From Rebecca billardiae RCC1528 (taxonomy: Eukaryota; Protista; Haptophyta): a stretch of DNA of 64,000 nucleotides. The DNA lies in contig OZ251228.1 of NCBI GenBank assembly GCA_965240325.2, positions 620,001 to 684,000 on the forward strand. The letters run 5' to 3'. The position numbers and the translations under genes are program-made. Positions 47,263 through 62,253 of this stretch are shown here, in pieces. How positions within the stretch are numbered: position 1 is the first letter of the stretch; every line of letters starts with the position of its first letter. Below the pieces are notes generated by a model. That model worked only from the letters and a program-made list of their open reading frames with translations, was not told the DNA's origin and ran no database searches.

Positions 47263-50200
47263 CTAGCTGTGCGCCGGCGCACGGCGCAGCATGCGCGCCA
47301 GGTCGGCGTGGCCGTTGGCGTCGGCAACGTCAGCGGCCGTCCGACCCTCCACGTCGGCCGCGGCCGCGTCCGCTCCGCGCTCGAGCAGCAGCGCGGCGAT
47401 GGCGGCGTCGTTGCGCATGGCGGCGACGTGGAGCGCAGTGCCGCCTCGCCCGGCGTCGGCGTCCTGCCCGGCACGCGCGTCCGCGGGCACGCCGGCGCGC
47501 AGCAGCGCGTTGCACGCGGCCGCAAGGCCACGCGCCGCCGCGAGCGGCAGCAGCGACGGCTCGGCGCACGCGGCGTGTGGCGCGGCGTCGGCGATGGCTG
47601 CAGCAGCTTCGGCGTGCCCGTGCGCGATGGCGAGGCGCAGCGCGCTGTCGGGCGCTCCAGCGATCTCCACTGCTGGTGCGCCCTGCCCTCCGGCAGCAGC
47701 CGTGCCGCTGCCATCCCGGTGCACCTCGCCCGCACCAGCGCTCGCGCGTGCGGCGGCGGCGCTCTCGGGCAGCGGCTGCGCGCCAGCCAGCAGCAGCAGG
47801 CGGCAGACGGCTGCATGGCCGCGCCGCGCGGTGTGCCCGCCCCTGCAGGCTGCCATCAGCGCGGTGGTGCCGTCCCGCTTGGCGCCCGTCAAGTCCGCGC
47901 CCGCCTTGAGCAGCGCGGACACGCATGCGGTGTGCCCGCCCCCGCAGGCGAGCATCAGCGCGGTGGTGCCGTCCCACTTGGCGTGTGCCACGTCTGCGCC
48001 CGCCTTGAGCAGCGCGGACACGCATGCGGTGTGCCCGCCCCCGCAGGCGAGCATCAGCGCGGTGGTGCCGTCCCGCTTGGCGAGTGCCACGTCTGCGCCC
48101 GCCTCGAGCAGCGCAGACACGCATGCGGTGTGCCCGCCCCCGCAGGCGAGCATCAGCGCGGTGGTGCCATCCCGCTTGGCGCCCGCCACGTCTGCGCCCG
48201 CCTTGAGCAGCGCGGACACGCATGCTTTGTGCCCGCCCCCGCAGGCGAGCATCAGCGCGGTGGTGCCGTCCCACTTGGCGCCCGTCAAGTCCGCGCCCGC
48301 CTTGCGCAGCGCGGACACGCATGCTTTGTGCCCGCCCCCGCAGGCGAGCATCAGCGCGGTGGTGCCGTCCCGCTTGGCGTGTGCCACGTCTGCGCCCGCC
48401 TTGAGCAGCGCGGACACGCATGCGGTGTGCCCGCCCCCGCAGGCGAGCATCAGCGCGGTGGTGCCGTCCCGCTTGGCGCCCGCCACGTCTGCGCCCGCCT
48501 CGAGCAGCGCAGACATGCATGCGGTGTGCCCGCCCCCGCAGGCGAGCATCAGCGCGGTGGTGCCGTCCCGCTTGGCGCCCGCCACGTCTGCGCCCGCCTC
48601 GAGCAGCGCAGACATGCATGCGGTGTGCCCGCCCCCGCAGGCGAGCATCAGCGCGGTGGTGCCGTCCCGCTTGGCGTGTGCCACGTCTGCGCCCGCCTCG
48701 AGCAGCGCAGACATGCATGCGGTGTGCCCGCCCCCGCAGGCGAGCATCAGCGCGGTGGTGCCGTCCCGCTTGGCGCCCGCCACGTCTGCGCCCGCCTCGA
48801 GCAGCGCAGACACGCATGCGGTGTGCCCGCCCCCGCAGGCGAGCATCAGCGCGGTGGTGCCGTCCCGCTTGGCGCCCGCCACGTCTGCGCCCGCCTCGAG
48901 CAGCGCAGACATGCATGCTTTGTGCCCGCCCCCGCAGGCGAGCATCAGCGCGGTGGTGCCGTCCCGCTTGGCGCCCGCCACGTCTGCGCCCGCCTCGAGC
49001 AGCGCAGACATGCATGCGGCGTGCCCGCCCCCGCAGGCGAGCATCAGCGCGGTGGTGCCGTCCCGCTTGGCGCCCGCCACGTCCGCGCCCGAGTCGAGCA
49101 GCGCGGACACGCATGTGGCGTGCCCGTGTTGGCAGGCGCGCATCAGCGCGGTGAAGCCGTCCTGATCGGCCAGCGCGACGTCCGCGCCCGCCTCGAGCAG
49201 CGCGGGCACGCATGCTGTGCGCCCGCCACTGCAGGCGAGCATCAGTGCAGTGGAGCCGTCCTGCCTGGCGTACACCGCGTTAGCGCCCGCCTCGAGCAGC
49301 GCGGACACGCATGCTGCGTGCCCGTACATGCAGGCGAGCATCAGCGCAGTGGTGCCATTCTGCTTGGCGTGCGCCACGTCTGCGCCCGCCTCGGACAGCG
49401 CGGACACGCATGCTGCGTGGCCGTACATGCAGGCGAGCATCAGCACGCTGAAGCCGTCCTGCCTGGCGTGCGCCACGTCCGCGCCAGCCTCTAGCAGCGC
49501 GGACACGCATGCGGCGTGCCCGCTCTGGCAGGCGAGCATCAGCGCGGTGAAGCCGTCCTCATCGGCGTGCGCCACGTCCGCGCCAGCCTCAAGCAGCGCG
49601 GACACGCATGCGGCGTGCCCGCTCTGGCAGGCGAGCATCAGCGCGGTGAAGCCGTCCTCATCGGCGTGCGCCACGTCCGCGCCCGCCTCGAGCAGCGTGG
49701 GCACCAGTGCGGTGTGCCCGTAGATGCAGGCCAGCATCAGCGCAGTGCGGCCCTTCTGATCGACGGGCGCCACGTCTGCGCCCTTCTCGAGCAGCGCGGA
49801 CACGCCTGCTGTGTCCCCGTTCAGGCAGGCGAGCATCAGCGCGGTGTGGCCGTGCTGATCGGCGTGCGCCACGTCCGCGTCAGCCTCGAACAGCGCGGAC
49901 ACACATGCGGTGTGCCCGCCGCTGCAGGCGCGCATCAGCGCGGTGGCGCCGTCCTGATCGGCGTGCGCCGCGTCCGCGCCCGCCTCGAGCAGCGCGGACA
50001 CACATGCGGTGTGCCTGCCCCCGTGGGCGAGCATCAGCGCGGTGGTGCCGTTCTGCGTGGCGTGCGCCACGTCCGCGCCCGCCTCGAGCAGCGCGGACAC
50101 GCATGCGGTGTGCCCCTTGTAGCAGGCGAGCATCAGCGCGGTGGCGCCGCGCTGATCGGCGTGCGCCACGTCCGCGCCCGCCTCGAGCAGCGCGGACACG

Positions 50201-53200
50201 CATGCAGCGTGCCCGCCCCTGCAGGCGTGCCTCAGCGCGGTGGTGCCGTCCTGCGTGGCGCCCGCCACGTCCGCGCCCGCCTCGAGCAGCGCGGACATGC
50301 ATGCGGTGTGCCCGCCCCCGCAAGCGAGCATCAGCGCGGTGGTGCCGTCCCGCTTGGCGTGTGCCACGTCTGCGCCCGCCTTGAGCAGCGCGGACACGCA
50401 TGCGGTGTGCCCGCCCCCGCAGGCGAGCATCAGCGCGGTGGTGCCGTCCCGCTTGGCGCCCGTCAAGTCCGCGCCCGCCTTGAGCAGCGCAGACACGCAT
50501 GCGGCGTGCCCGCCCCCGCAGGCGAGCATCAGCGCGGTGGTGCCGTCCCACTTGGCGTGTGCCACGTCTGCGCCCGCCTTGAGCAGCGCGGACACGCATG
50601 CGGTGTGCCCGCCCCCGCAGGCGAGCATCAGCGCGGTGTGGTCGAACCCATTGGCGTGTGACACGTCCGCGCCCGCCTCGAGCAGCGCGGACACGCATGC
50701 GGCGTGCCCCCTCTGGCAGGCGAGCGTCAGCGCGGTGTGGCCGAACCAATTGGCGTGTGACACGTCCGCGCCCGCGTCGAGCAGCGCGGACACGCATGCA
50801 GCGTGCCCGAGCAGGCTTGCACGCGTCAGCACCGGCAATCCTCCCGCGTCCTCGAACCCGACATCCGCGCCATGCCGCGCGAGCAGCGTGGCACACTCGG
50901 CGTGCCCTTGCTTGCATGCGCGCTCCAGCGCTGCAGACGCGTGCGCGCGCGCCTCCGCGCCCCCGCCTGCTCGCGCCCTCACGCCCTCGTGCGCTGCGCA
51001 GATGCCCGCCGCCTCCACCAGCCGCGAAGGAAGCTCGCTCGCGTCAGGCTCGTCTCGCAGCATGCGCAGCAGGTACTGGCACGCCTCGTACAGCTGCCCG
51101 CTCGCCTCACGCGTCTCAGCCTCGCCTGTCTCCCCCGACGCGTCCGCGCCGCTCACCAGACCGCTCCTGAGCTGCGTGATGAACGCCCGCGGCTTGGCCG
51201 CGCAGCTCTCGGGCAGCGGCAGCTCGCCAGCGCCGAGCGCGCGCTCGACCGCGTCGCGCAGCGCGCTGAGCTGCTCGTGCCCGTACCGCGCCGCCAGCTG
51301 GCGCAGCCGCCACACGCCGAGCACGAGCCGCCCGCGCGCGCGCCCCTCCTTGCGCACGTGCAGTCCTGCAAGCTCAGTCTGCGTCGCCTCGGCCGTCAGC
51401 CAGTCCGCGAGCGACTGGTGGTATATGCGCAGCGGCGCGTCGGCGCGCGGGCCGGCGGCGCCCATCGGTGGCGTGCGCGGTGGCGTCGCGCCGTCGCGCT
51501 TGCCGTCGCCCTCGCCCTCGGCCACCTCGACCACGAAGCCAGAAAGCGCGCGCAGCTGCTTGCTCAGCTCGTCCTCGCCCTCGTCGCCCGAGTAGCTCGG
51601 GTACACGCCGCGCAGCGCCTCGAGCAGCTCGGCGCGCGAGAGCGGCGCGTGCGCGACAAGCATCAGCTCGAGCACGGTGCGCACGCCCTTGCGCTCCGCC
51701 TCAGTCGGCAGCGCGCGCTTGAGCGACTCGTTGTACAGCCGCTCGAGGCCGTGCGGCAGCGTTGCGAGGTCGGCCAGCGTGATCCGCCCGCTGCCGAGCT
51801 GCTCGATGGCCTGCGTGGCGTACATGAAGTTGCCGCCGCACGCCTCGCTCAGCTCGTGCGCCGCTCGCTCGAGCTCGTCGGGCGCAGGCGCGGCCACCTC
51901 ACGCGCGCGGCGCGCGTACGCCTCGAGCCGCGCGCGCACGAACGCGGCGGCGTCGGCGCGGTCGTCGTCCGCGTCCACGTCGAGTCGCTCGCGCGGCATC
52001 TCGTTGAGCGGCGCGAGCACTGCGTGCTCGGGGCGCGAGGACGCCAAGATTCGCAGCCAGTTGGGCAGCGTCTTGTGCTGCGAGACCGTTGCGAGGATGT
52101 CGGCGATCGAGTGCGAGCTGCCCTGCACGTGCCGCGCCTCGTCGAGCGAGTCGATCGCGAGCAGCATCGTCTTGCGCGGCGCGGCGGATGGCGGGATGTT
52201 GCGCAGCGGCGCGAGCACAAGTCGCTCGAACGCGCTCGGCCCGTCCTCGCGGTCGTCGAGCGCGAGCTCGCCGCCCTTCTTGCGCAGCTTGGCCTCGCGC
52301 AGCTGCGCGCCGTATGCAGGCAGCGCGTGCCGCAGCTGCAGCGAGATGTTGCGCACAAACGACGAGGGCAGCAGCCAGTCGTGGTACGCCGCCGAGCACA
52401 CGTGCTGGCCGAGCACGCGCTCGTGCGCCGCGATCGAGCCGTCGTCGCACTGCACGAGCTGCGCGAGCAGCGCCGACTTGCCCGTGCCCGGCCCGCCCAC
52501 GACGAGCAGCACCGGCTCCGCGCGAGCATCTGCCGCCCACGCCTCGATGCGCCTGAGCGGCGCGTCGCGCCCCACAAAGTGCTTCCGCTTCGTGCTCATG
52601 AATTTGGCGAAGGCGTCATTCAGCGGCGGCGGCGGGGCCGCGTCCCCGGCAGATGAGCGCCGCTGCTGCCGCTGCGCCACATAGAAGCTGTCAAACTTCT
52701 CGTGAAGGCCGTCGACCTTGCTCGCCACGCCGCCGACCTTGCTCTCCACGCCGTCGAGCTTGCTCTCCAGCCGCGCCGTCACCTCGCCAAGCAGCAGCTC
52801 GAGACGGTTGGCGCGCACGTCCGCGCTCGCGTCGAGCTCGTCGGCAAACGTCTTGAGTGCCGACTCGAGCTCGTCGTCGCTCGCGCCGCGCTCGCGCAGC
52901 TGCTCGATGGCCGCGCGCTGCGCCTCGAGCGCCGCGCCGAGGCGCTCGAGCTGCTCGAACGTGCCCACCGCGAGCCGCTGCGCCGCGCGCTCCGCCGTCG
53001 CGTTCACGCGCGCCATCGCCGCCTCAATCGCCTCCGCGCGCTCGCGCAGCTCGCTGGCGTCGCGCTGCGTGCCTAGCAGCAGCTTGATGAAGCCGCGCTC
53101 GCAGAAGGCGGCCAGGCTCTCCGCCGCGGCTTCCACCGCGGCCGTGAGCTCGTCTGCGTCCTGCTTGAGCGGCTCCACCAGCCTCTGCTTGCTCGGCGGC

Positions 53201-53949
53201 CACTCGCCCATGTACGCGAGAACCTCCGCCATCTCCGCGACTGTCCGGAGCAGCAGGTCACCGAGCTCGCGCGCCGCCTGCCGGTTGGCGTACACGCCAT
53301 GCACGCGCTCGAGGGCGACCGAGCACGCGCCGAAGAGCAGGCTGAGCGCCTCGTCGAGTGGCCACGGCACGACCGGCATGAGCCGCAGCACGGCGTCCGC
53401 AGCTCCGCGCGCCATGTCGAGAAGCTCGGGCGCCTGCGCCTCCGCGTGCGCAACGAGATTGTCGCCCAGCTCGCGCACGCTCGCGTGCAGCCGCGGCGCG
53501 AGTTCCTCGGCCTCGCCAGACTTGGTCTGCACGCCGAGCTGCGCAGCGAGCGCGGTGTCGACGGCGTTGTTGGTCTCGACCACCACCTCGTCAACCGTCG
53601 GTGCGGCATGCTCGGCCGCGGCGGGCGCGGCGGCGGGCGCGGCGGCGGGCGCGGCAGCGGGCGAGGCGGCGGGCGAGGCGGCGGGCGGGGCGGCGGGTGG
53701 CTCGAGCGTGTCACCGCGCGATGACACAGCATCGCGCGAGCCGTCTGGCGAGCGGGCAAGCTCATCCGCCGATTCCTGCCAGGCCTGGCGTGCGGGCGGC
53801 GCCGGCCCGGCCGAACGTGCGCCGGCGAGCTGCGCTGCTGCAGCGGCACTGGTCCCGGGTGTCGTTGGTGCGGCGGGGCTCTGGACGGGCGCCACACCTG
53901 CGGCCGGCTCGGGCTCGACACGTCGCCGGGACGACGCGCCGCAACCCAT
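47263..53949 (-). CDS. NLR-like STAND protein: MGCGAS acylation motif, MLKL/HeLo-like helical bundle, coiled coil, NACHT (NPHP3/TANC-like), ~35 ankyrin repeats; intronless, 2228 aa
   Basis: ATG 53949 MGCGASS; FVGR...VLLVVGGPGTGKSALL (Walker A, 52474-52497); LLAIDSLDE (Walker B); GNFMYA; YHQSLADWL; GxTALMLACxxGHxACVSALLEAGADV repeats. Confidence 0.9.
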   Translation of the reverse strand: MGCGASSRRRVEPEPAAGVAPVQSPAAPTTPGTSAAAAAQLAGARSAGPAPPARQAWQESADELARSPDGSRDAVSSRGDTLEPPAAPPAASPAASPAAAPAAAPAAAPAAAEHAAPTVDEVVVETNNAVDTALAAQLGVQTKSGEAEELAPRLHASVRELGDNLVAHAEAQAPELLDMARGAADAVLRLMPVVPWPLDEALSLLFGACSVALERVHGVYANRQAARELGDLLLRTVAEMAEVLAYMGEWPPSKQRLVEPLKQDADELTAAVEAAAESLAAFCERGFIKLLLGTQRDASELRERAEAIEAAMARVNATAERAAQRLAVGTFEQLERLGAALEAQRAAIEQLRERGASDDELESALKTFADELDASADVRANRLELLLGEVTARLESKLDGVESKVGGVASKVDGLHEKFDSFYVAQRQQRRSSAGDAAPPPPLNDAFAKFMSTKRKHFVGRDAPLRRIEAWAADARAEPVLLVVGGPGTGKSALLAQLVQCDDGSIAAHERVLGQHVCSAAYHDWLLPSSFVRNISLQLRHALPAYGAQLREAKLRKKGGELALDDREDGPSAFERLVLAPLRNIPPSAAPRKTMLLAIDSLDEARHVQGSSHSIADILATVSQHKTLPNWLRILASSRPEHAVLAPLNEMPRERLDVDADDDRADAAAFVRARLEAYARRAREVAAPAPDELERAAHELSEACGGNFMYATQAIEQLGSGRITLADLATLPHGLERLYNESLKRALPTEAERKGVRTVLELMLVAHAPLSRAELLEALRGVYPSYSGDEGEDELSKQLRALSGFVVEVAEGEGDGKRDGATPPRTPPMGAAGPRADAPLRIYHQSLADWLTAEATQTELAGLHVRKEGRARGRLVLGVWRLRQLAARYGHEQLSALRDAVERALGAGELPLPESCAAKPRAFITQLRSGLVSGADASGETGEAETREASGQLYEACQYLLRMLRDEPDASELPSRLVEAAGICAAHEGVRARAGGGAEARAHASAALERACKQGHAECATLLARHGADVGFEDAGGLPVLTRASLLGHAACVSALLDAGADVSHANWFGHTALTLACQRGHAACVSALLEAGADVSHANGFDHTALMLACGGGHTACVSALLKAGADVAHAKWDGTTALMLACGGGHAACVSALLKAGADLTGAKRDGTTALMLACGGGHTACVSALLKAGADVAHAKRDGTTALMLACGGGHTACMSALLEAGADVAGATQDGTTALRHACRGGHAACVSALLEAGADVAHADQRGATALMLACYKGHTACVSALLEAGADVAHATQNGTTALMLAHGGRHTACVSALLEAGADAAHADQDGATALMRACSGGHTACVSALFEADADVAHADQHGHTALMLACLNGDTAGVSALLEKGADVAPVDQKGRTALMLACIYGHTALVPTLLEAGADVAHADEDGFTALMLACQSGHAACVSALLEAGADVAHADEDGFTALMLACQSGHAACVSALLEAGADVAHARQDGFSVLMLACMYGHAACVSALSEAGADVAHAKQNGTTALMLACMYGHAACVSALLEAGANAVYARQDGSTALMLACSGGRTACVPALLEAGADVALADQDGFTALMRACQHGHATCVSALLDSGADVAGAKRDGTTALMLACGGGHAACMSALLEAGADVAGAKRDGTTALMLACGGGHKACMSALLEAGADVAGAKRDGTTALMLACGGGHTACVSALLEAGADVAGAKRDGTTALMLACGGGHTACMSALLEAGADVAHAKRDGTTALMLACGGGHTACMSALLEAGADVAGAKRDGTTALMLACGGGHTACMSALLEAGADVAGAKRDGTTALMLACGGGHTACVSALLKAGADVAHAKRDGTTALMLACGGGHKACVSALRKAGADLTGAKWDGTTALMLACGGGHKACVSALLKAGADVAGAKRDGTTALMLACGGGHTACVSALLEAGADVALAKRDGTTALMLACGGGHTACVSALLKAGADVAHAKWDGTTALMLACGGGHTACVSALLKAGADLTGAKRDGTTALMAACRGGHTARRGHAAVCRLLLLAGAQPLPESAAAARASAGAGEVHRDGSGTAAAGGQGAPAVEIAGAPDSALRLAIAHGHAEAAAAIADAAPHAACAEPSLLPLAAARGLAAACNALLRAGVPADARAGQDADAGRGGTALHVAAMRNDAAIAALLLERGADAAAADVEGRTAADVADANGHADLARMLRRAPAHS
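47830..50820 (-). repeat. ~30 highly similar 99-bp ankyrin-coding repeats
   Basis: GCAGGCGAGCATCAGCGCGGTGGTGCCGTCC recurs with a 99-bp period. Confidence 0.95.
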
Positions 53950-54829
53950 GCCTCGCGGTGTTGCCCTTCTCGTGCACCCTCGTCGGCTGCGATTCGCGGG
54001 GCTGGTGATCAAGACCTCATCAAGCGTTTTCACGCGTGCACCGGACTGGAAGTGAGTAACGACTTCATCAGTCCAAGGATGGCAAGTTGTACGTAGGATT
54101 ATGAATAATGCTCGGATTCCGCTACTGCCTTTGTATCCATACGTACAGTAATCTACAATTAGTACAGCACGTTGAAACATAGTAAACAGTAACTGTACAG
54201 TACGGAGGGACGGTATCTCGATCTCGTTCGTCAACGACCTCTAACACTTCGTCCGGCCGGCTTGGCCCAAAACGACGAAGAACGACGACGACGGTGCCTC
54301 CGTTCGGCCGCCGGGGCGTATGGCACGAGACGGGCGCGCGCGGCGCTGACGTGCTCCCAAAACAGCGCCTACTGTAGGTTGTGGATTCGGCTGCCGCCGC
54401 GCCGCTGCCGAGCCCGCCGGGTGCTCTCGTCTTCTTCAGTCCGATCAGTGGCCGAATGGAAAGCCCGCGCCGCACGAGGTACGCGAGGGGCGCGAGGAAA
54501 TTTTCCTCGGATGTTAAGGTTTAGATCGGATGTCGAGCCTGTCGAGCCCTCACCGATACGTAAGGCTTTTGAAACATCCGCGAAAGCGTCCCCAGCCCCA
54601 GCAGGCAGACAGAGCGCGCGCCGTGACGAAAGTGCGCATTCCAACAGACCCAAGTAATAGTGCCAGCTAAGACCTAAGTGCATCGTTGGCTGGTCGCGCA
54701 GCCCGTTTGCGATCACAGGGTCACTGAACCGTCGCCCGAGGCCGATTCGAGAGCAGTTCTGACGAGATTTTGCTTAAGACGATGGGCCCGTTTGCATGTT
54801 GGGCGCAGGAGGACATGGCTCCCGTAACT

Positions 54830-55734: not shown

Positions 55735-58700
55735 CGACGAGCCATGAGGGCTGCAGTGACGAGCAGGCGTGACCGATTCAGCCACAGTCGACTGATGTCA
55801 CGTCTGTAGCCGAGGCCTGACGTCCCTGGCCGAGCGCCCAGCTGTATCAGACTGACCGCCACTATCACTAACTACGATGATCCTGCTGTTCCTCCCTCTC
55901 TTCTTCCCCCTCTCTTCTCCCTCCTTCCCTCCTCCTCTCTCCTTTTTTCTCCCCTCTCCTTTTTCTGGCGCGAGTTTACAATAACTCCACCAGCATGGAC
56001 AATTTGCCGCGCCGGGCTACTAGGGCATGCTGGTGGACTCTTTTGGCTGTCCGGAAGGGCTTGGGCAGGACTTTTACTTATTGGGCTATCTTTTGGCTCA
56101 CATAGGACTTCAGACTGCCATCTTTTGGCTCAGCCAATGGTTGCACGAGTTGGCGGAGGCCTTGCGGCGACAACGCCCTTGGCCCTCGTTGACTCCCCTC
56201 CTCCGGCCCTCGCACTTGGTCGCTGACGATGGCGCCCGGCGAGGGGTTCAAACACCCTGAGACCGCGCGTGGGGAGCGACCTCAAGGCGCGTTTGGCAAC
56301 GCACGATCGACGCTAAACGCCGTGGCATCGCGTGCATGACTCCCACTGGCACATATACGCGTGTCGGCAGGGGACGCGCCTGACCACCCACGTGGCGTCT
56401 GATTGCTAAGTCGAAGCAGTCCATGCGCAACAAGCTCTTGTCAGCGCCGGCGTTGGCGCTGCTCACGTTGCTGACTTCGGTGCTAGCGCCGCCGACCTTC
56501 GGTGGACGCGGCCGTATCTCGCGATGCCATGCCGGCCGCGGCCGATGCGTGGCGCCGTGGCGTTGCCCTTCGCCGACGACGTGACGCACACGCGCGCGCC
56601 CGTGACACCGACGCCGCCTGTGCGCGCGGCCCTCGGCGGCCGCCGCTGCCGTTAGCGGGCGGCGACGCGGGTGATGGGTAGACGCGCACTACAGTCTCAA
56701 CTGCGAGCGCACGGCCTCTGTGGCGCCGGCAGTGCCGAATGCGCCGCCCGCCGCCGCGCCGCACAGCGCGCCGCCCGCCGTTGCGTGCCTAGCAGCGGCG
56801 GCCGCGCTCGCGCGCGCCGACAGCCACGGCGCTGCGCAGCTTGTCGCGGCGGCGCTGGGCGCATGGCTGAGAGGCGCGATCAGCAGCAGATATGCGAGAG
56901 GAAGCACACCGTGGAGCGAGGGACCATGCGCGTGCGTCCGCGCTCGCGAAGCCGGCCCCTGCTGCACGGTAGGTGAGTGTGAGATCGTGGTCGGCCCAGA
57001 GCTTCAGCAGCGTGGGCTCCGGGCGGTACCGGGGACGAGGCGCTAAAGCTGCTCGGGGGCGGCCCTGCGAGCGCCAACGTCGCGGACGCTCTTGCCGCCG
57101 TGATGCGTGCCACTTGGCGCGTGAGGCGGCTGAGGAAGGCACATGGGTGCACCGCAGCAGCCCTCCAGTGTCTCTGAGTGCCGCAGAGGCTGGACGACAC
57201 CCTCACTGAGTCACTCGCACGCGCGCGCGCATTTGCATCGGGAGTCGCATACAGGCCGCGGCACCGGTCCACCGCACCTGCACTCGCGCGCCCCGTCGTC
57301 AGGCCAGCCCTCCTTGCTCTCGCGGCGCTGAGTCCTTTGTGACAGCGACCCACCCAGTGGCACGTGCTGTTGGCAGCCGTGCGCTGTGCCGTGTGCGTAT
57401 GCAATAGCCATCCGCTGACTGACACACGCTTTCGTGCGCATCGGCCGAGGCGACTGTTCGCCCGCATTCCGCCGCCTCCTCTCGTCTGTCGCGTGACCAC
57501 CTGCACAGCTCCACTTCAGCTCGCACGTGTGCGGAGGCTGCTGATGGGCGGAGTGCCGCCCACTTGCGCGATGGCCGCTGACTGGCCTGAGACGCGCCCC
57601 GCACTCGAGCGCTCCTCTTGCTCAGCAGCAGTGGTCGATGAGTGAATCAGCCAGCTGCCCATTGAATGCATCGGCCTGTGGTTGTGACGGCAGGGCGTGT
57701 GCGCACCGCTACCGCCTCACTGAGCCCAGGTCTGACGGCGTGCGCTTTGCCTGCGGAGGGGTCGCTGTCGTCGCCTGTCGTCCCACGACGACAGTGATTT
57801 GAAGCGCCGAGCGCGCGACGAGCCATGAGGGCTGCAGTGACGAGCAGGCGTGACCGATTCAGCCACAGTCGACTGATGTCACGTCTGTAGCCGAGGCCTG
57901 ACGTCCCTGGCCGAGCGCCCAGCTGTATCAGACTGACCGCCACTATCACCAACTACGATGATCCTGCTGTTCCTCCCTCTCTTCTTCCCCCTCTCTTCTC
58001 CCTCCTTCCCTCCTCCTCTCTCCTTTTTTCTCCCCTCTCCTTTTTCTGGCGCGAGTTTACAATAACTCCACCAGCATGGACAATTTTGCCGCGCCGGGCT
58101 ACTAGGGCATGCTGGTGGACTCTTTTGGCTGTCCGGAAGGGCTTGGGCAGGACTTTTACTTATTGGGCTATCTTTTGGCTCACATAGGACTTCAGACTGC
58201 CATCTTTTGGCTCAGCCAATGGTTGCACGAGTTGGCGGAGGCCTTGCGGCGACAACGCCCTTGGCCCTCGTTGACTCCCCTCCTCCGGCCCTCGCACTTG
58301 GTCGCTGACGATGGCGCCCGGCGAGGGGTTCAAACACCCTGAGACCGCGCGTGGGGAGCGACCTCAAGGCGCGTTTGGCAACGCACGATCGACGCTAAAC
58401 GCCGTGGCATCGCGTGCATGACTCCCACTGGCACATATACGCGTGTCGGCAGGGGACGCGCCTGACCACCCACGTGGCGTCTGATTGCTAAGTCGAAGCA
58501 GTCCATGCGCAACAAGCTCTTGTCAGCGCCGGCGTTGGCGCTGCTCACGTTGCTGACTTCGGTGCTAGCGCCGCCGACCTTCGGTGGACGCGGCCGTATC
58601 TCGCGATGCCATGCCGGCCGCGGCCGATGCGTGGCGCCGTGGCGTTGCCCTTCGCCGACGACGTGACGCACACGCGCGCGCCCGTGACACCGACGCCGCC

Positions 58701-61700
58701 TGTGCGCGCGGCCCTCGGCGGCCGCCGCTGCCGTTAGCGGGCGGCGACGCGGGTGATGGGTAGACGCGCACTACAGTCTCAACTGCGAGCGCACGGCCTC
58801 TGTGGCGCCGGCAGTGCCGAATGCGCCGCCCGCCGCCGCGCCGCACAGCGCGCCGCCCGCCGTTGCGTGCCTAGCAGCGGCGGCCGCGCTCGCGCGCGCC
58901 GACAGCCACGGCGCTGCGCAGCTTGTCGCGGCGGCGCTGGGCGCATGGCTGAGAGGCGCGATCAGCAGCAGATATGCGAGAGGAAGCACACCGTGGAGCG
59001 AGGGACCATGCGCGTGCGTCCGCGCTCGCGAAGCCGGCCCCTGCTGCACGGTAGGTGAGTGTGAGATCGTGGTCGGCCCAGAGCTTCAGCAGCGTGGGCT
59101 CCGGGCGGTACCGGGGACGAGGCGCTAAAGCTGCTCGGGGGCGGCCCTGCGAGCGCCAACGTCGCGGACGCTCTTGCCGCCGTGATGCGTGCCACTTGGC
59201 GCGTGAGGCGGCTGAGGAAGGCACATGGGTGCACCGCAGCAGCCCTCCAGTGTCTCTGAGTGCCGCAGAGGCTGGACGACACCCTCACTGAGTCACTCGC
59301 ACGCGCGCGCGCATTTGCATCGGGAGTCGCATACAGGCCGCGGCACCGGTCCACCGCACCTGCACTCGCGCGCCCCGTCGTCAGGCCAGCCCTCCTTGCT
59401 CTCGCGGCGCTGAGTCCTTTGTGACAGCGACCCACCCAGTGGCACGTGCTGTTGGCAGCCGTGCGCTGTGCCGTGTGCGTATGCAATAGCCATCCGCTGA
59501 CTGACACACGCTTTCGTGCGCATCGGCCGAGGCGACTGTTCGCCCGCATTCCGCCGCCTCCTCTCGTCTGTCGCGTGACCACCTGCACAGCTCCACTTCA
59601 GCTCGCACGTGTGCGGAGGCTGCTGATGGGCGGAGTGCCGCCCACTTGCGCGATGGCCGCTGACTGGCCTGAGACGCGCCCCGCACTCGAGCGCTCCTCT
59701 TGCTCAGCAGCAGTGGTCGATGAGTGAATCAGCCAGCTGCCCATTGAATGCATCGGCCTGTGGTTGTGACGGCAGGGCGTGTGCGCACCGCTACCGCCTC
59801 ACTGAGCCCAGGTCTGACGGCGTGCGCTTTGCCTGCGGAGGGGTCGCTGTCGTCGCCTGTCGTCCCACGACGACAGTGATTTGAAGCGCCGAGCGCGCGA
59901 CGAGCCATGAGGGCTGCAGTGACGAGCAGGCGTGACCGATTCAGCCACAGTCGACTGATGTCACGTCTGTAGCCGAGGCCTGACGTCCCTGGCCGAGCGC
60001 CCAGCTGTATCAGACTGACCGCCACTATCACCAACTACGATGATCCTGCTGTTCCTCCCTCTCTTCTTCCCCCTCTCTTCTCCCTCCTTCCCTCCTCCTC
60101 TCTCCTTTTTTCTCCCCTCTCCTTTTTCTGGCGCGAGTTTACAATAACTCCACCAGCATGGACAATTTGCCCGCGCCGGGCTACTAGGGCATGCTGGTGG
60201 ACTCTTTTGGCTGTCCGGAAGGGCTTGGGCAGGACTTTTACTTATTGGGCTATCTTTTGGCTCACATAGGACTTCAGACTGCCATCTTTTGGCTCAGCCA
60301 ATGGTTGCACGAGTTGGCGGAGGCCTTGCGGCGACAACGCCCTTGGCCCTCGTTGACTCCCCTCCTCCGGCCCTCGCACTTGGTCGCTGACGATGGCGCC
60401 CGGCGAGGGGTTCAAACACCCTGAGACCGCGCGTGGGGAGCGACCTCAAGGCGCGTTTGGCAACGCACGATCGACGCTAAACGCCGTGGCATCGCGTGCA
60501 TGACTCCCACTGGCACATATACGCGTGTCGGCAGGGGACGCGCCTGACCACCCACGTGGCGTCTGATTGCTAAGTCGAAGCAGTCCATGCGCAACAAGCT
60601 CTTGTCAGCGCCGGCGTTGGCGCTGCTCACGTTGCTGACTTCGGTGCTAGCGCCGCCGACCTTCGGTGGACGCGGCCGTATCTCGCGATGCCATGCCGGC
60701 CGCGGCCGATGCGTGGCGCCGTGGCGTTGCCCTTCGCCGACGACGTGACGCACACGCGCGCGCCCGTGACACCGACGCCGCCTGTGCGCGCGGCCCTCGG
60801 CGGCCGCCGCTGCCGTTAGCGGGCGGCGACGCGGGTGATGGGTAGACGCGCACTACAGTCTCAACTGCGAGCGCACGGCCTCTGTGGCGCCGGCAGTGCC
60901 GAATGCGCCGCCCGCCGCCGCGCCGCACAGCGCGCCGCCCGCCGTTGCGTGCCTAGCAGCGGCGGCCGCGCTCGCGCGCGCCGACAGCCACGGCGCTGCG
61001 CAGCTTGTCGCGGCGGCGCTGGGCGCATGGCTGAGAGGCGCGATCAGCAGCAGATATGCGAGAGGAAGCACACCGTGGAGCGAGGGACCATGCGCGTGCG
61101 TCCGCGCTCGCGAAGCCGGCCCCTGCTGCACGGTAGGTGAGTGTGAGATCGTGGTCGGCCCAGAGCTTCAGCAGCGTGGGCTCCGGGCGGTACCGGGGAC
61201 GAGGCGCTAAAGCTGCTCGGGGGCGGCCCTGCGAGCGCCAACGTCGCGGACGCTCTTGCCGCCGTGATGCGTGCCACTTGGCGCGTGAGGCGGCTGAGGA
61301 AGGCACATGGGTGCACCGCAGCAGCCCTCCAGTGTCTCTGAGTGCCGCAGAGGCTGGACGACACCCTCACTGAGTCACTCGCACGCGCGCGCGCATTTGC
61401 ATCGGGAGTCGCATACAGGCCGCGGCACCGGTCCACCGCACCTGCACTCGCGCGCCCCGTCGTCAGGCCAGCCCTCCTTGCTCTCGCGGCGCTGAGTCCT
61501 TTGTGACAGCGACCCACCCAGTGGCACGTGCTGTTGGCAGCCGTGCGCTGTGCCGTGTGCGTATGCAATAGCCATCCGCTGACTGACACACGCTTTCGTG
61601 CGCATCGGCCGAGGCGACTGTTCGCCCGCATTCCGCCGCCTCCTCTCGTCTGTCGCGTGACCACCTGCACAGCTCCACTTCAGCTCGCACGTGTGCGGAG

Positions 61701-62253
61701 GCTGCTGATGGGCGGAGTGCCGCCCACTTGCGCGATGGCCGCTGACTGGCCTGAGACGCGCCCCGCACTCGAGCGCTCCTCTTGCTCAGCAGCAGTGGTC
61801 GATGAGTGAATCAGCCAGCTGCCCATTGAATGCATCGGCCTGTGGTTGTGACGGCAGGGCGTGTGCGCACCGCTACCGCCTCACTGAGCCCAGGTCTGAC
61901 GGCGTGCGCTTTGCCTGCGGAGGGGTCGCTGTCGTCGCCTGTCGTCCCACGACGACAGTGATTTGAAGCGCCGAGCGCGCGACGAGCCATGAGGGCTGCA
62001 GTGACGAGCAGGCGTGACCGATTCAGCCACAGTCGACTGATGTCACGTCTGTAGCCGAGGCCTGACGTCCCTGGCCGAGCGCCCAGCTGTATCAGACTGA
62101 CCGCCACTATCACCAACTACGATGATCCTGCTGTTCCTCCCTCTCTTCTTCCCCCTCTCTTCTCCCTCCTTCCCTCCTCCTCTCTCCTTTTTTCTCCCCT
62201 CTCCTTTTTCTGGCGCGAGTTTACAATAACTCCACCAGCATGGACAATTTGCC
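55735..62253. repeat. Tandem array: three ~2082-bp units plus a 274-bp partial unit; probable non-autonomous mobile element concatemer
   Basis: CGACGAGCCATGAGGG at 55735, 57816, 59898 and 61980; identical ORF sets offset by 2082; array ends at GACAATTTGCC 62253. Confidence 0.96.

Follow-up and report, generated by a model that had tools for sequence, protein, structure and literature searches.

HeLo-like-NACHT-repeat proteins account for about a fifth of the annotated N-termini of fungal NOD-like receptors (NLRs; NOD, nucleotide-binding oligomerization domain), and the HeLo-like domain is among the commonest of these N-termini, its partner being almost always a NACHT domain together with WD40, ankyrin (ANK) or tetratricopeptide (TPR) repeats (PMC4986451). 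In plants, N-myristoylation is common among NLRs with a coiled-coil N-domain (CC-NLRs or CNLs) and is needed for death signaling by SUMM2 (PMC13043302), and endomembranes are the site from which the acylated 'PML' CNLs kill (PMC11467418). In chlorophyte algae, intracellular immune receptors are thought to be few (PMC13315243), and what is known so far of NACHT, TIR and leucine-rich repeat (LRR) genes in Gephyrocapsa huxleyi is limited to their expression as a marker of virus resistance (PMC12489294). Little is known of the way in which unicellular algae perceive infection and enter cell death when viruses bring their blooms to an end, and the open-access literature yielded no account of an algal NLR of the MLKL/HeLo type. 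The present report concerns a gene on the minus strand of a 64,000-nucleotide stretch of DNA from the haptophyte Rebecca billardiae RCC1528 (contig OZ251228.1 of assembly GCA_965240325.2, positions 620,001 to 684,000; hereafter the window), which combines a sensor of variable ankyrin repeats with an intact NACHT module and an MLKL/HeLo-type bundle, and is a directly testable candidate for algal cell-death immunity.

The encoded protein totals 2,228 amino acids, and its domain map supports the tripartite effector-NOD-repeat (NLR-like) layout put forward in an initial annotation made from the DNA sequence. The same annotation had pointed to effector-NACHT-ANK as a fungal NLR arrangement, which the literature confirms (PMC4986451). 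With evenly balanced confidence, the protein is read as a single-chain NLR-like receptor of the STAND (signal transduction ATPases with numerous domains) class, in which the ankyrin repeats would be the sensor, the NACHT module the switch, and the bundle the killing element at a membrane to which the protein would be tethered by acyl groups.

The N-terminal four-helix bundle

Residues 196-335 very probably form a divergent member of the MLKL_N/HeLo/CC bundle superfamily. Four partly independent lines bear on this identity, namely a structure search, language-model features, a homologue from Prymnesium polylepis and a family profile, and together they bear out the MLKL/HeLo-type N-terminal domain that had been suggested initially, at the level of a four-helix-bundle identification. 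The AlphaFold2 (AF2) model, built from a five-sequence alignment (pLDDT 81.6, pTM 0.81, four of the five models concordant), has six helices over residues 144-335 and contains an up-down four-helix bundle that superposes on solved N-terminal domains of MLKL or plant MLKLs. Similarity to a four-helix bundle, whose absence was to count against the initial suggestion, was therefore found, and the helical domain expected at ~53000-53430 of the window lies close to the modeled bundle proper (Table 1). The two helices ahead of the bundle end at a PWPL/PPPL turn in the model and in the family alignments.

A shape search of the ESM Atlas returned MLKL_N, MCAfunc or DUF7792 in eight of ten rows, the best row having a TM-score of 0.60 over 134 residues at 2.4 A, and all of the matches covered model residues ~57-196, corresponding to residues 196-335 of the protein. 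The best natural whole-domain match of the bundle in the PDB was AtMLKL3 (PDB 6ka4), and further structural matches were to the Rx CC domain, a wheat CNL resistosome and the NRG1.1 CC-R domain. Foldseek returned only designed helical repeats from the PDB, at E above 1e-3, and nothing meaningful from viral structures, among which no viral mimic was found. Language-model features of residues 190-340 gave a top cluster at 0.95 with 202 shared features and an MLKL_N cluster at 0.94 with 195, and all ten of the best named matches in the language-model search belonged to one family, the signal being weaker with a longer query. Scans against Pfam, PDB sequences, PADLOC and NCBIfam assigned the N-terminal 480 residues to no family, and the Pfam MLKL_N model (PF22215) gave no match to the protein's own sequence, its gathering score not being reached. 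Matches of the N-terminal 480 residues to DUF4795, apolipoprotein and the ZorA tail were set aside as weak long-helix or coiled-coil noise.

Nowhere in the N-terminal 460 residues is hydrophobicity higher than in the first bundle helix (residues 198-218), though it is moderate there (Kyte-Doolittle 1.3), and the bundle carries a net acidic charge (15 K+R against 23 D+E). For HeLo and HELL activity, a membrane-prone helix at the N-terminus is required (PMC10197012). Here the bundle comes ahead of the NOD, but ~195 residues stand before it, and it lacks the free N-terminal position that the bundle has in HeLo/CC executioners. An acidic bundle that is not N-terminal would also suit an anchored sensor in which the bundle serves as a homotypic adaptor or nucleator for other proteins that carry out the killing, for instance MLKL-like proteins encoded elsewhere in the genome that stand alone or are linked to a kinase, in the manner of SUMM2, which acts via ADR1-type helper NLRs and which, N-myristoyl-tethered itself, depends on helper resistosomes for death (PMC13043302). 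Such an indirect role is considered unlikely, given that the 64-kb window holds no partner and that fungal HeLo-like NLRs are regarded as direct effectors (PMC4986451).

Relatives of the bundle

An exhaustive phmmer search with residues 140-335 against 1.84 billion representatives returned six matches, of which four were real and two, P0004 (a TPR methyltransferase) and P0007 (a repeat peptide), were discarded as repeat artefacts. P0003 (E 5e-10) and P0005 (E 2e-8) have the bundle domain fused to RI-type LRRs, in P0005 with a coiled coil between, and the NTPase is absent from both, a possible 'sensor-executioner without switch' architecture. P0006 (E 1e-6) is a fragment, and P0008 (E 4e-5) is the homologue from the haptophyte P. 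polylepis. Both LRR fusions (P0003, L001:621-1961; P0005, L002:96-1775) come from one JGI sample (3300038657) and lie on short contigs with a GC content of ~60% and a GC content at third codon positions (GC3) of ~0.77. When the family alignment and P0008 served as queries in word-indexed searches, the sole addition was P0009, which is 84% identical to P0008 and matches the billardiae protein by BLASTP at E 3e-13.

P0008 matches Pfam MLKL_N at E 1.4e-5 (25.0 bits, cut-off 27) and carries a pre-computed PF22215.2 annotation, and this match aligns in register with residues ~215-304 of the billardiae protein. P0009 scores 13 bits with MLKL_N, and P0005 matches Rx_N at E 0.02. When the family profile was compared with the PDB, the best non-repeat matches were the human MLKL N-terminal domain, in several constructs, and full-length MLKL, at E values of 0.1-0.4 only, level with apolipophorin III. 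In this alignment alpha2-alpha4 are again in register, and the invariant Phe and Asp of F..[KR].F.K....RD are matched in the MLKL sequence F..RSNICRFL.ASQD. A match of the family profile to a C-type lectin neck (3jqh) was discarded as a repeat artefact. Two metagenome scans gave no relatives, and the 64-kb window contains no paralogue of the N-domain or the NTPase elsewhere. The family is rare, with four true relatives among 1.8 billion representatives, and would be missed by Pfam-based censuses.

The NTPase module and helical connector

The bundle is followed, after a helical connector, by a STAND NTPase of the NACHT/NPHP3/TANC type. The module passed the Pfam cut-offs for NPHP3_N (42.8 bits, E 8e-11, cut-off 24.8) and AAA_16 (40.1 bits, E 7e-10, cut-off 32.6) and failed that of the classical NACHT model PF05729 (20.0 bits against 26.7), and its match to AAA_lid_TANC1 was weak (E 0.25). 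The Walker A and B motifs of what had been called an intact NACHT are indeed intact, the applicable family model being NPHP3_N/AAA_16. In an alignment with two relatives, P0001 and P0002, Walker A, the Walker B segment LLAIDSLDE (596-604) and a sensor residue, Arg639, are invariant, as are the motifs FVGR, HFCR, GNFLY and H.SL.DWL, and on these motifs the P-loop is apparently competent. As for the winged helix of the initial annotation, the motifs EPL..AEL and H.SL.DWL are common to P0002, which clears the HTH_TANC1 cut-off, while the score of the billardiae region itself falls under it (Table 1). An AF2 model of the NTPase module reached a pLDDT of 53 and was too poor for a structure search.

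When 5.8 billion proteins were searched within a limited length range and under word filters, P0001 and P0002, at ~30% identity, were the only relatives of the NTPase. P0001 (L003:4242-8969) combines an N-domain of no named family, unrelated to the billardiae bundle, with NACHT and WD40 regions, P0002 is a TIR-NACHT-WD40 protein, and both are encoded on gene-dense, bacterial-looking contigs. The TIR domain of P0002 occupies the position of the bundle, and an effector role of that slot is therefore supported. P0001 adjoins SNF2/NOV_C and UvrD helicase genes, and P0002 lies near a Peptidase_C14 (caspase-like) gene. The gene context of the two looks like a defense island. The NACHT module may be of bacterial origin (compare Kibby et al., bioRxiv 10.1101/2022.07.19.500537).

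The coiled coil of the initial annotation was recovered as a clean a/d heptad, read by eye from the sequence at residues ~394-422 (L398/V401/V405/V408/V412/L415/F419/F422), while residues ~336-425 as a whole gave weak long-helix Pfam matches only. A nearly perfect heptad run, LDGVESK / VGGVASK / VDGLHEK / FDSF, lies directly ahead of the NTPase module (window 52683-52766). The run is a possible zipper for pre-association or oligomerization.

The ankyrin array

The ankyrins of the initial annotation follow the NTPase and amount to about 34 repeats, 31 of them in register (Table 1). At the DNA level, a 99-bp unit occurs 30.1 times in tandem, with 89% matches and 0 indels (window 47828-50809). 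The units over residues 1628-2023 are near-identical (KRDGTTALMLACGGGH...), those on the flanks are more diverged, and the unit that closes the register (2024-2056) is disrupted. Repeat positions 1, 2, 3, 5, 13, 14 and 32 show the highest sequence entropy, and the remaining scaffold is almost invariant. These seven are the target-binding positions that are randomized in designed ankyrin binders, and the variation is concentrated at binding-face positions.

The order of NTPase and repeats bears on a non-immune reading, in which the protein would be a TANC/NPHP3-type membrane or cytoskeletal scaffold that organizes a complex at the cortex or cilium, with N-terminal helices that are no more than a structural coiled coil. 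NPHP3_N and HTH_TANC1 are the best Pfam models, TANC proteins likewise place ankyrin repeats after the NTPase, and generic helical bundles can be matched by chance. A scaffold is nevertheless judged improbable, since the Pfam scan shows no TPR region, HTH_TANC1 also matches the TIR-NACHT protein P0002 and is thus not scaffold-specific, the ankyrin array is homogenized and variable at binding-face positions, as in fast-evolving receptors, and MLKL_N was singled out by several independent methods. The initial annotation had named a conserved single-copy TANC-like scaffold as the finding that would speak against it; the search of 5.8 billion proteins, within its length range and word filters, found no such orthologue and no close orthologue of any kind, only the two ~30%-identical NACHT-WD40 proteins.

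Reading frame, start codon and N-terminal motif

The open frame runs unbroken on the minus strand from 54234 to 47263. One open reading frame (ORF) covers all of the domains, and the earlier description of the gene as intronless holds to that extent and reaches no further. The sequence is taken as truly coding because of its domain hits and because, from codon ~101 on, GC3 is ~0.9 against a value of ~0.46 at second positions (GC2). The interval first assigned to the gene, 50820-53949, has the start ATG right and comprises just residues 1-1,043; its end at 50820 merely marks the onset of the regular ankyrin array, and the gene is 3.5 kb longer. Numerous long ORFs in antisense or shifted frames, of up to 741 amino acids, overlap the gene on both strands (window 47269-53921), and these were rejected as by-products of the very high GC content. 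The neighborhood, which had been described as rich in transposable elements, is repeat-rich, in that a 2,082-bp unit occurs three times head-to-tail at 99-100% identity upstream of the gene (window 56003-62250).

The 2.08-kb tandem array adjoining the gene and the disrupted last in-register ankyrin unit would fit an unexpressed or decaying gene that arose recently as a chimera amid repeat-rich DNA. This is very improbable in view of an intact 6.7-kb frame with strong host-like codon bias, intact catalytic motifs and a 99-bp ankyrin array that has remained without indels across 30 copies.

Codons 1-100 are Ala/Pro-rich and carry no frame signal, with GC at the three codon positions of 0.80/0.82/0.72 and 0.82/0.76/0.78, and for this reason the start codon M1, and with it the acylation motif, are given here as predictions. 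M1 is the most economical start, since no in-frame ATG occurs between codons 2 and 179 and since homology and modeled helices begin at residue ~144-150. The ATG at 53949 encodes MGCGAS, is in a purine(-3)/G(+4) context, and is the first past a sharp AT-rich dip. The dip (window 54100-54240) has a gene-frame GC3 of 0.3-0.47 in surroundings of 70-80% GC, sits ~150-290 bp upstream of the ATG, and is promoter-like or 5'-untranslated-region-like. At the level of the motif, the Gly2/Cys3 signal noted initially is present and consensus-compatible: MGCGASS satisfies the generic N-myristoylation pattern (Gly2, a small or uncharged residue 3, Ser6, no Pro7), with Cys3 adjacent and RRR behind. The linker that follows (residues 11-143) gave no match in the Pfam scan.

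The same NLR-like protein may instead lack a lipid anchor, either because an upstream exon is joined near codon ~100 or because the Ala/Pro/Arg-rich leader is a targeting presequence, MGCGAS then being coincidental, and this would be compatible with the other alternatives discussed here. The GC3-over-GC2 signature of the rest of the gene is absent from codons 1-100, and the MG start is absent from all of the bundle homologues found, whose N-termini differ. An unanchored protein is considered possible, if doubtful, as it has against it the lack of in-frame ATGs in codons 2-179 with homology and helices from ~144-150, the context of the ATG right behind the promoter-like dip, the agreement of the motif with the full consensus, including Cys3 and the basic cluster, and the acidic residues at positions 12 and 14. 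Acidic residues are atypical of transit peptides.

Table 1 Features of the gene and its product, with positions in the window
Feature	Residues	Window position	Strand	Basis and remarks
Whole coding sequence	1-2228	47263..53949	-	2,228 codons plus stop (47263-47265); in-frame interruptions 0
MGCGASSRRR	1-10	53920..53949	-	Pattern match; predicted N-myristoylation (Gly2, Ser6) and S-acylation (Cys3), then basic cluster
Ala/Pro/Ser-rich low-complexity linker	11-143	53521..53919	-	Ala 31%, Pro 14%
Two pre-bundle helices	144-193	53371..53520	-	AF2 helices H5-33 and H35-54, pLDDT 74-92; in all family members
MLKL_N/HeLo/CC-like four-helix bundle	196-335	52945..53364	-	AF2 model, structure search, language-model features
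Long helical connector	336-425	52675..52944	-	Weak long-helix Pfam matches; brace or coiled-coil-like
STAND NTPase, NACHT/NPHP3/TANC type (nucleotide-binding domain, lid, winged helix, helical extension)	459-1000	50950..52575	-	Pfam and alignment
Walker A, GGPGTGKS	485-492	52474..52497	-	Sequence, alignment
Walker B and acidic pair, MLLAIDSLDE	595-604	52138..52167	-	Sequence, alignment
Winged-helix region	747-812	51514..51711	-	Pfam HTH_TANC1 23.6 bits, E 4.8e-5, cut-off 27
Ankyrin-repeat region	1003-2228	47266..50943	-	Ank_2 E 2e-247; 31 units in 33-residue register (1034-2056), more near C-terminus

Proposed mechanism

On the favored reading of a single-chain receptor, the resting protein would be tethered to a membrane by N-myristoyl and palmitoyl groups on a flexible linker of ~130 residues, and the ankyrin array would combine ligand sensing with autoinhibition, holding the NACHT switch off. 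The NACHT module would be released by a trigger, for which a protein of viral, other non-self or modified-self nature is the most plausible candidate, and the released NACHT-type ATPase would oligomerize as a nucleotide-driven switch. The heptad connector and the oligomer could then gather many bundles at the membrane, where the bundles would open and insert, the hydrophobic first helix (198-218) being the candidate inserting element. Insertion would cause an ion leak, and the infected cell would die, an outcome equivalent to abortive infection. Pre-anchoring may replace the basic lipid-binding patch of MLKL, because the billardiae bundle is net acidic.

A bolder form of this reading can be advanced only tentatively. 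It supposes that a unicellular alga possesses a 'resistosome' that is complete in itself and anchored in advance, namely a NACHT-ankyrin receptor with two acyl groups, that its divergent MLKL/HeLo-type bundle permeabilizes the cell's own membrane once the ankyrin array detects a viral or foreign protein and so brings about abortive-infection death, that this rare algal effector family is also wired to LRR sensors without an NTPase, and that the NACHT module perhaps came from bacterial TIR- or NACHT-WD40 defense genes. If the mechanism is correct, the coupling of STAND switches to four-helix-bundle executioners, as seen in animals, plants and fungi, would extend to another eukaryotic lineage, which would bear on whether that coupling is ancient or has been assembled repeatedly.

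Comparison with known systems

The initial annotation ranked the gene as an undescribed system, which is an overstatement, as fungal HeLo-like-NACHT-repeat NLRs and acylated plant CC-NLRs are both common (PMC4986451, PMC13043302, PMC11467418). Because such receptors are known, the layout and the predicted lipid anchor each have precedents.

The fungal HeLo-like (HELL) and HeLo NLRs with NACHT and ANK, WD40 or TPR regions share with the billardiae protein the order of an MLKL-related bundle, NACHT and repeats, as well as internally very similar repeats and a proposed direct pore-forming output (PMC4986451, PMC10197012). They differ in that the billardiae bundle has no detectable similarity to the HeLo and HeLo-like Pfam models, is preceded by ~195 residues comprising the acylation motif, the long linker and two extra helices, and is joined to an NPHP3/TANC-like NACHT in an algal lineage. 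Plant CC-NLRs (SUMM2, PML5/PML, ZAR1-type and NRG1/ADR1) likewise carry a four-helix-bundle N-domain on a STAND switch, and the acylation predicted here matches the membrane tethering that cell death by the acylated members requires (PMC13043302, PMC11467418). In contrast to these, the billardiae protein has NACHT in place of NB-ARC and ankyrin in place of LRR, its predicted acyl site is separated from the bundle by the long linker, and there is no MADA-like N-terminal helix. SUMM2 further differs from the favored reading in acting via helper NLRs. In comparison with animal MLKL and plant MLKLs, the regulator is an NTPase with repeats and not a pseudokinase, and the bundle is acidic and lacks a match to Pfam MLKL_N.

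For the NTPase, the resemblance to TANC1/2 and NPHP3 lies in the Pfam NPHP3_N and HTH_TANC1 models, which cover the NTPase and winged helix (HTH_TANC1 below its cut-off), and that to the bacterial-looking NACHT-WD40 proteins P0001 and P0002 in ~30% identity and the motifs FVGR, GxPGxGKS, HFCR, DALDE, SRPE, GNFLY and H.SL.DWL, all of these proteins having other N- and C-terminal modules. What is new in the billardiae protein is its lineage, a rare and divergent bundle family that is not captured by Pfam, a long linker plus two additional helices that separate the predicted anchor from the bundle, and the combination of an NPHP3/TANC-like NACHT with a very long, homogenized ankyrin array.

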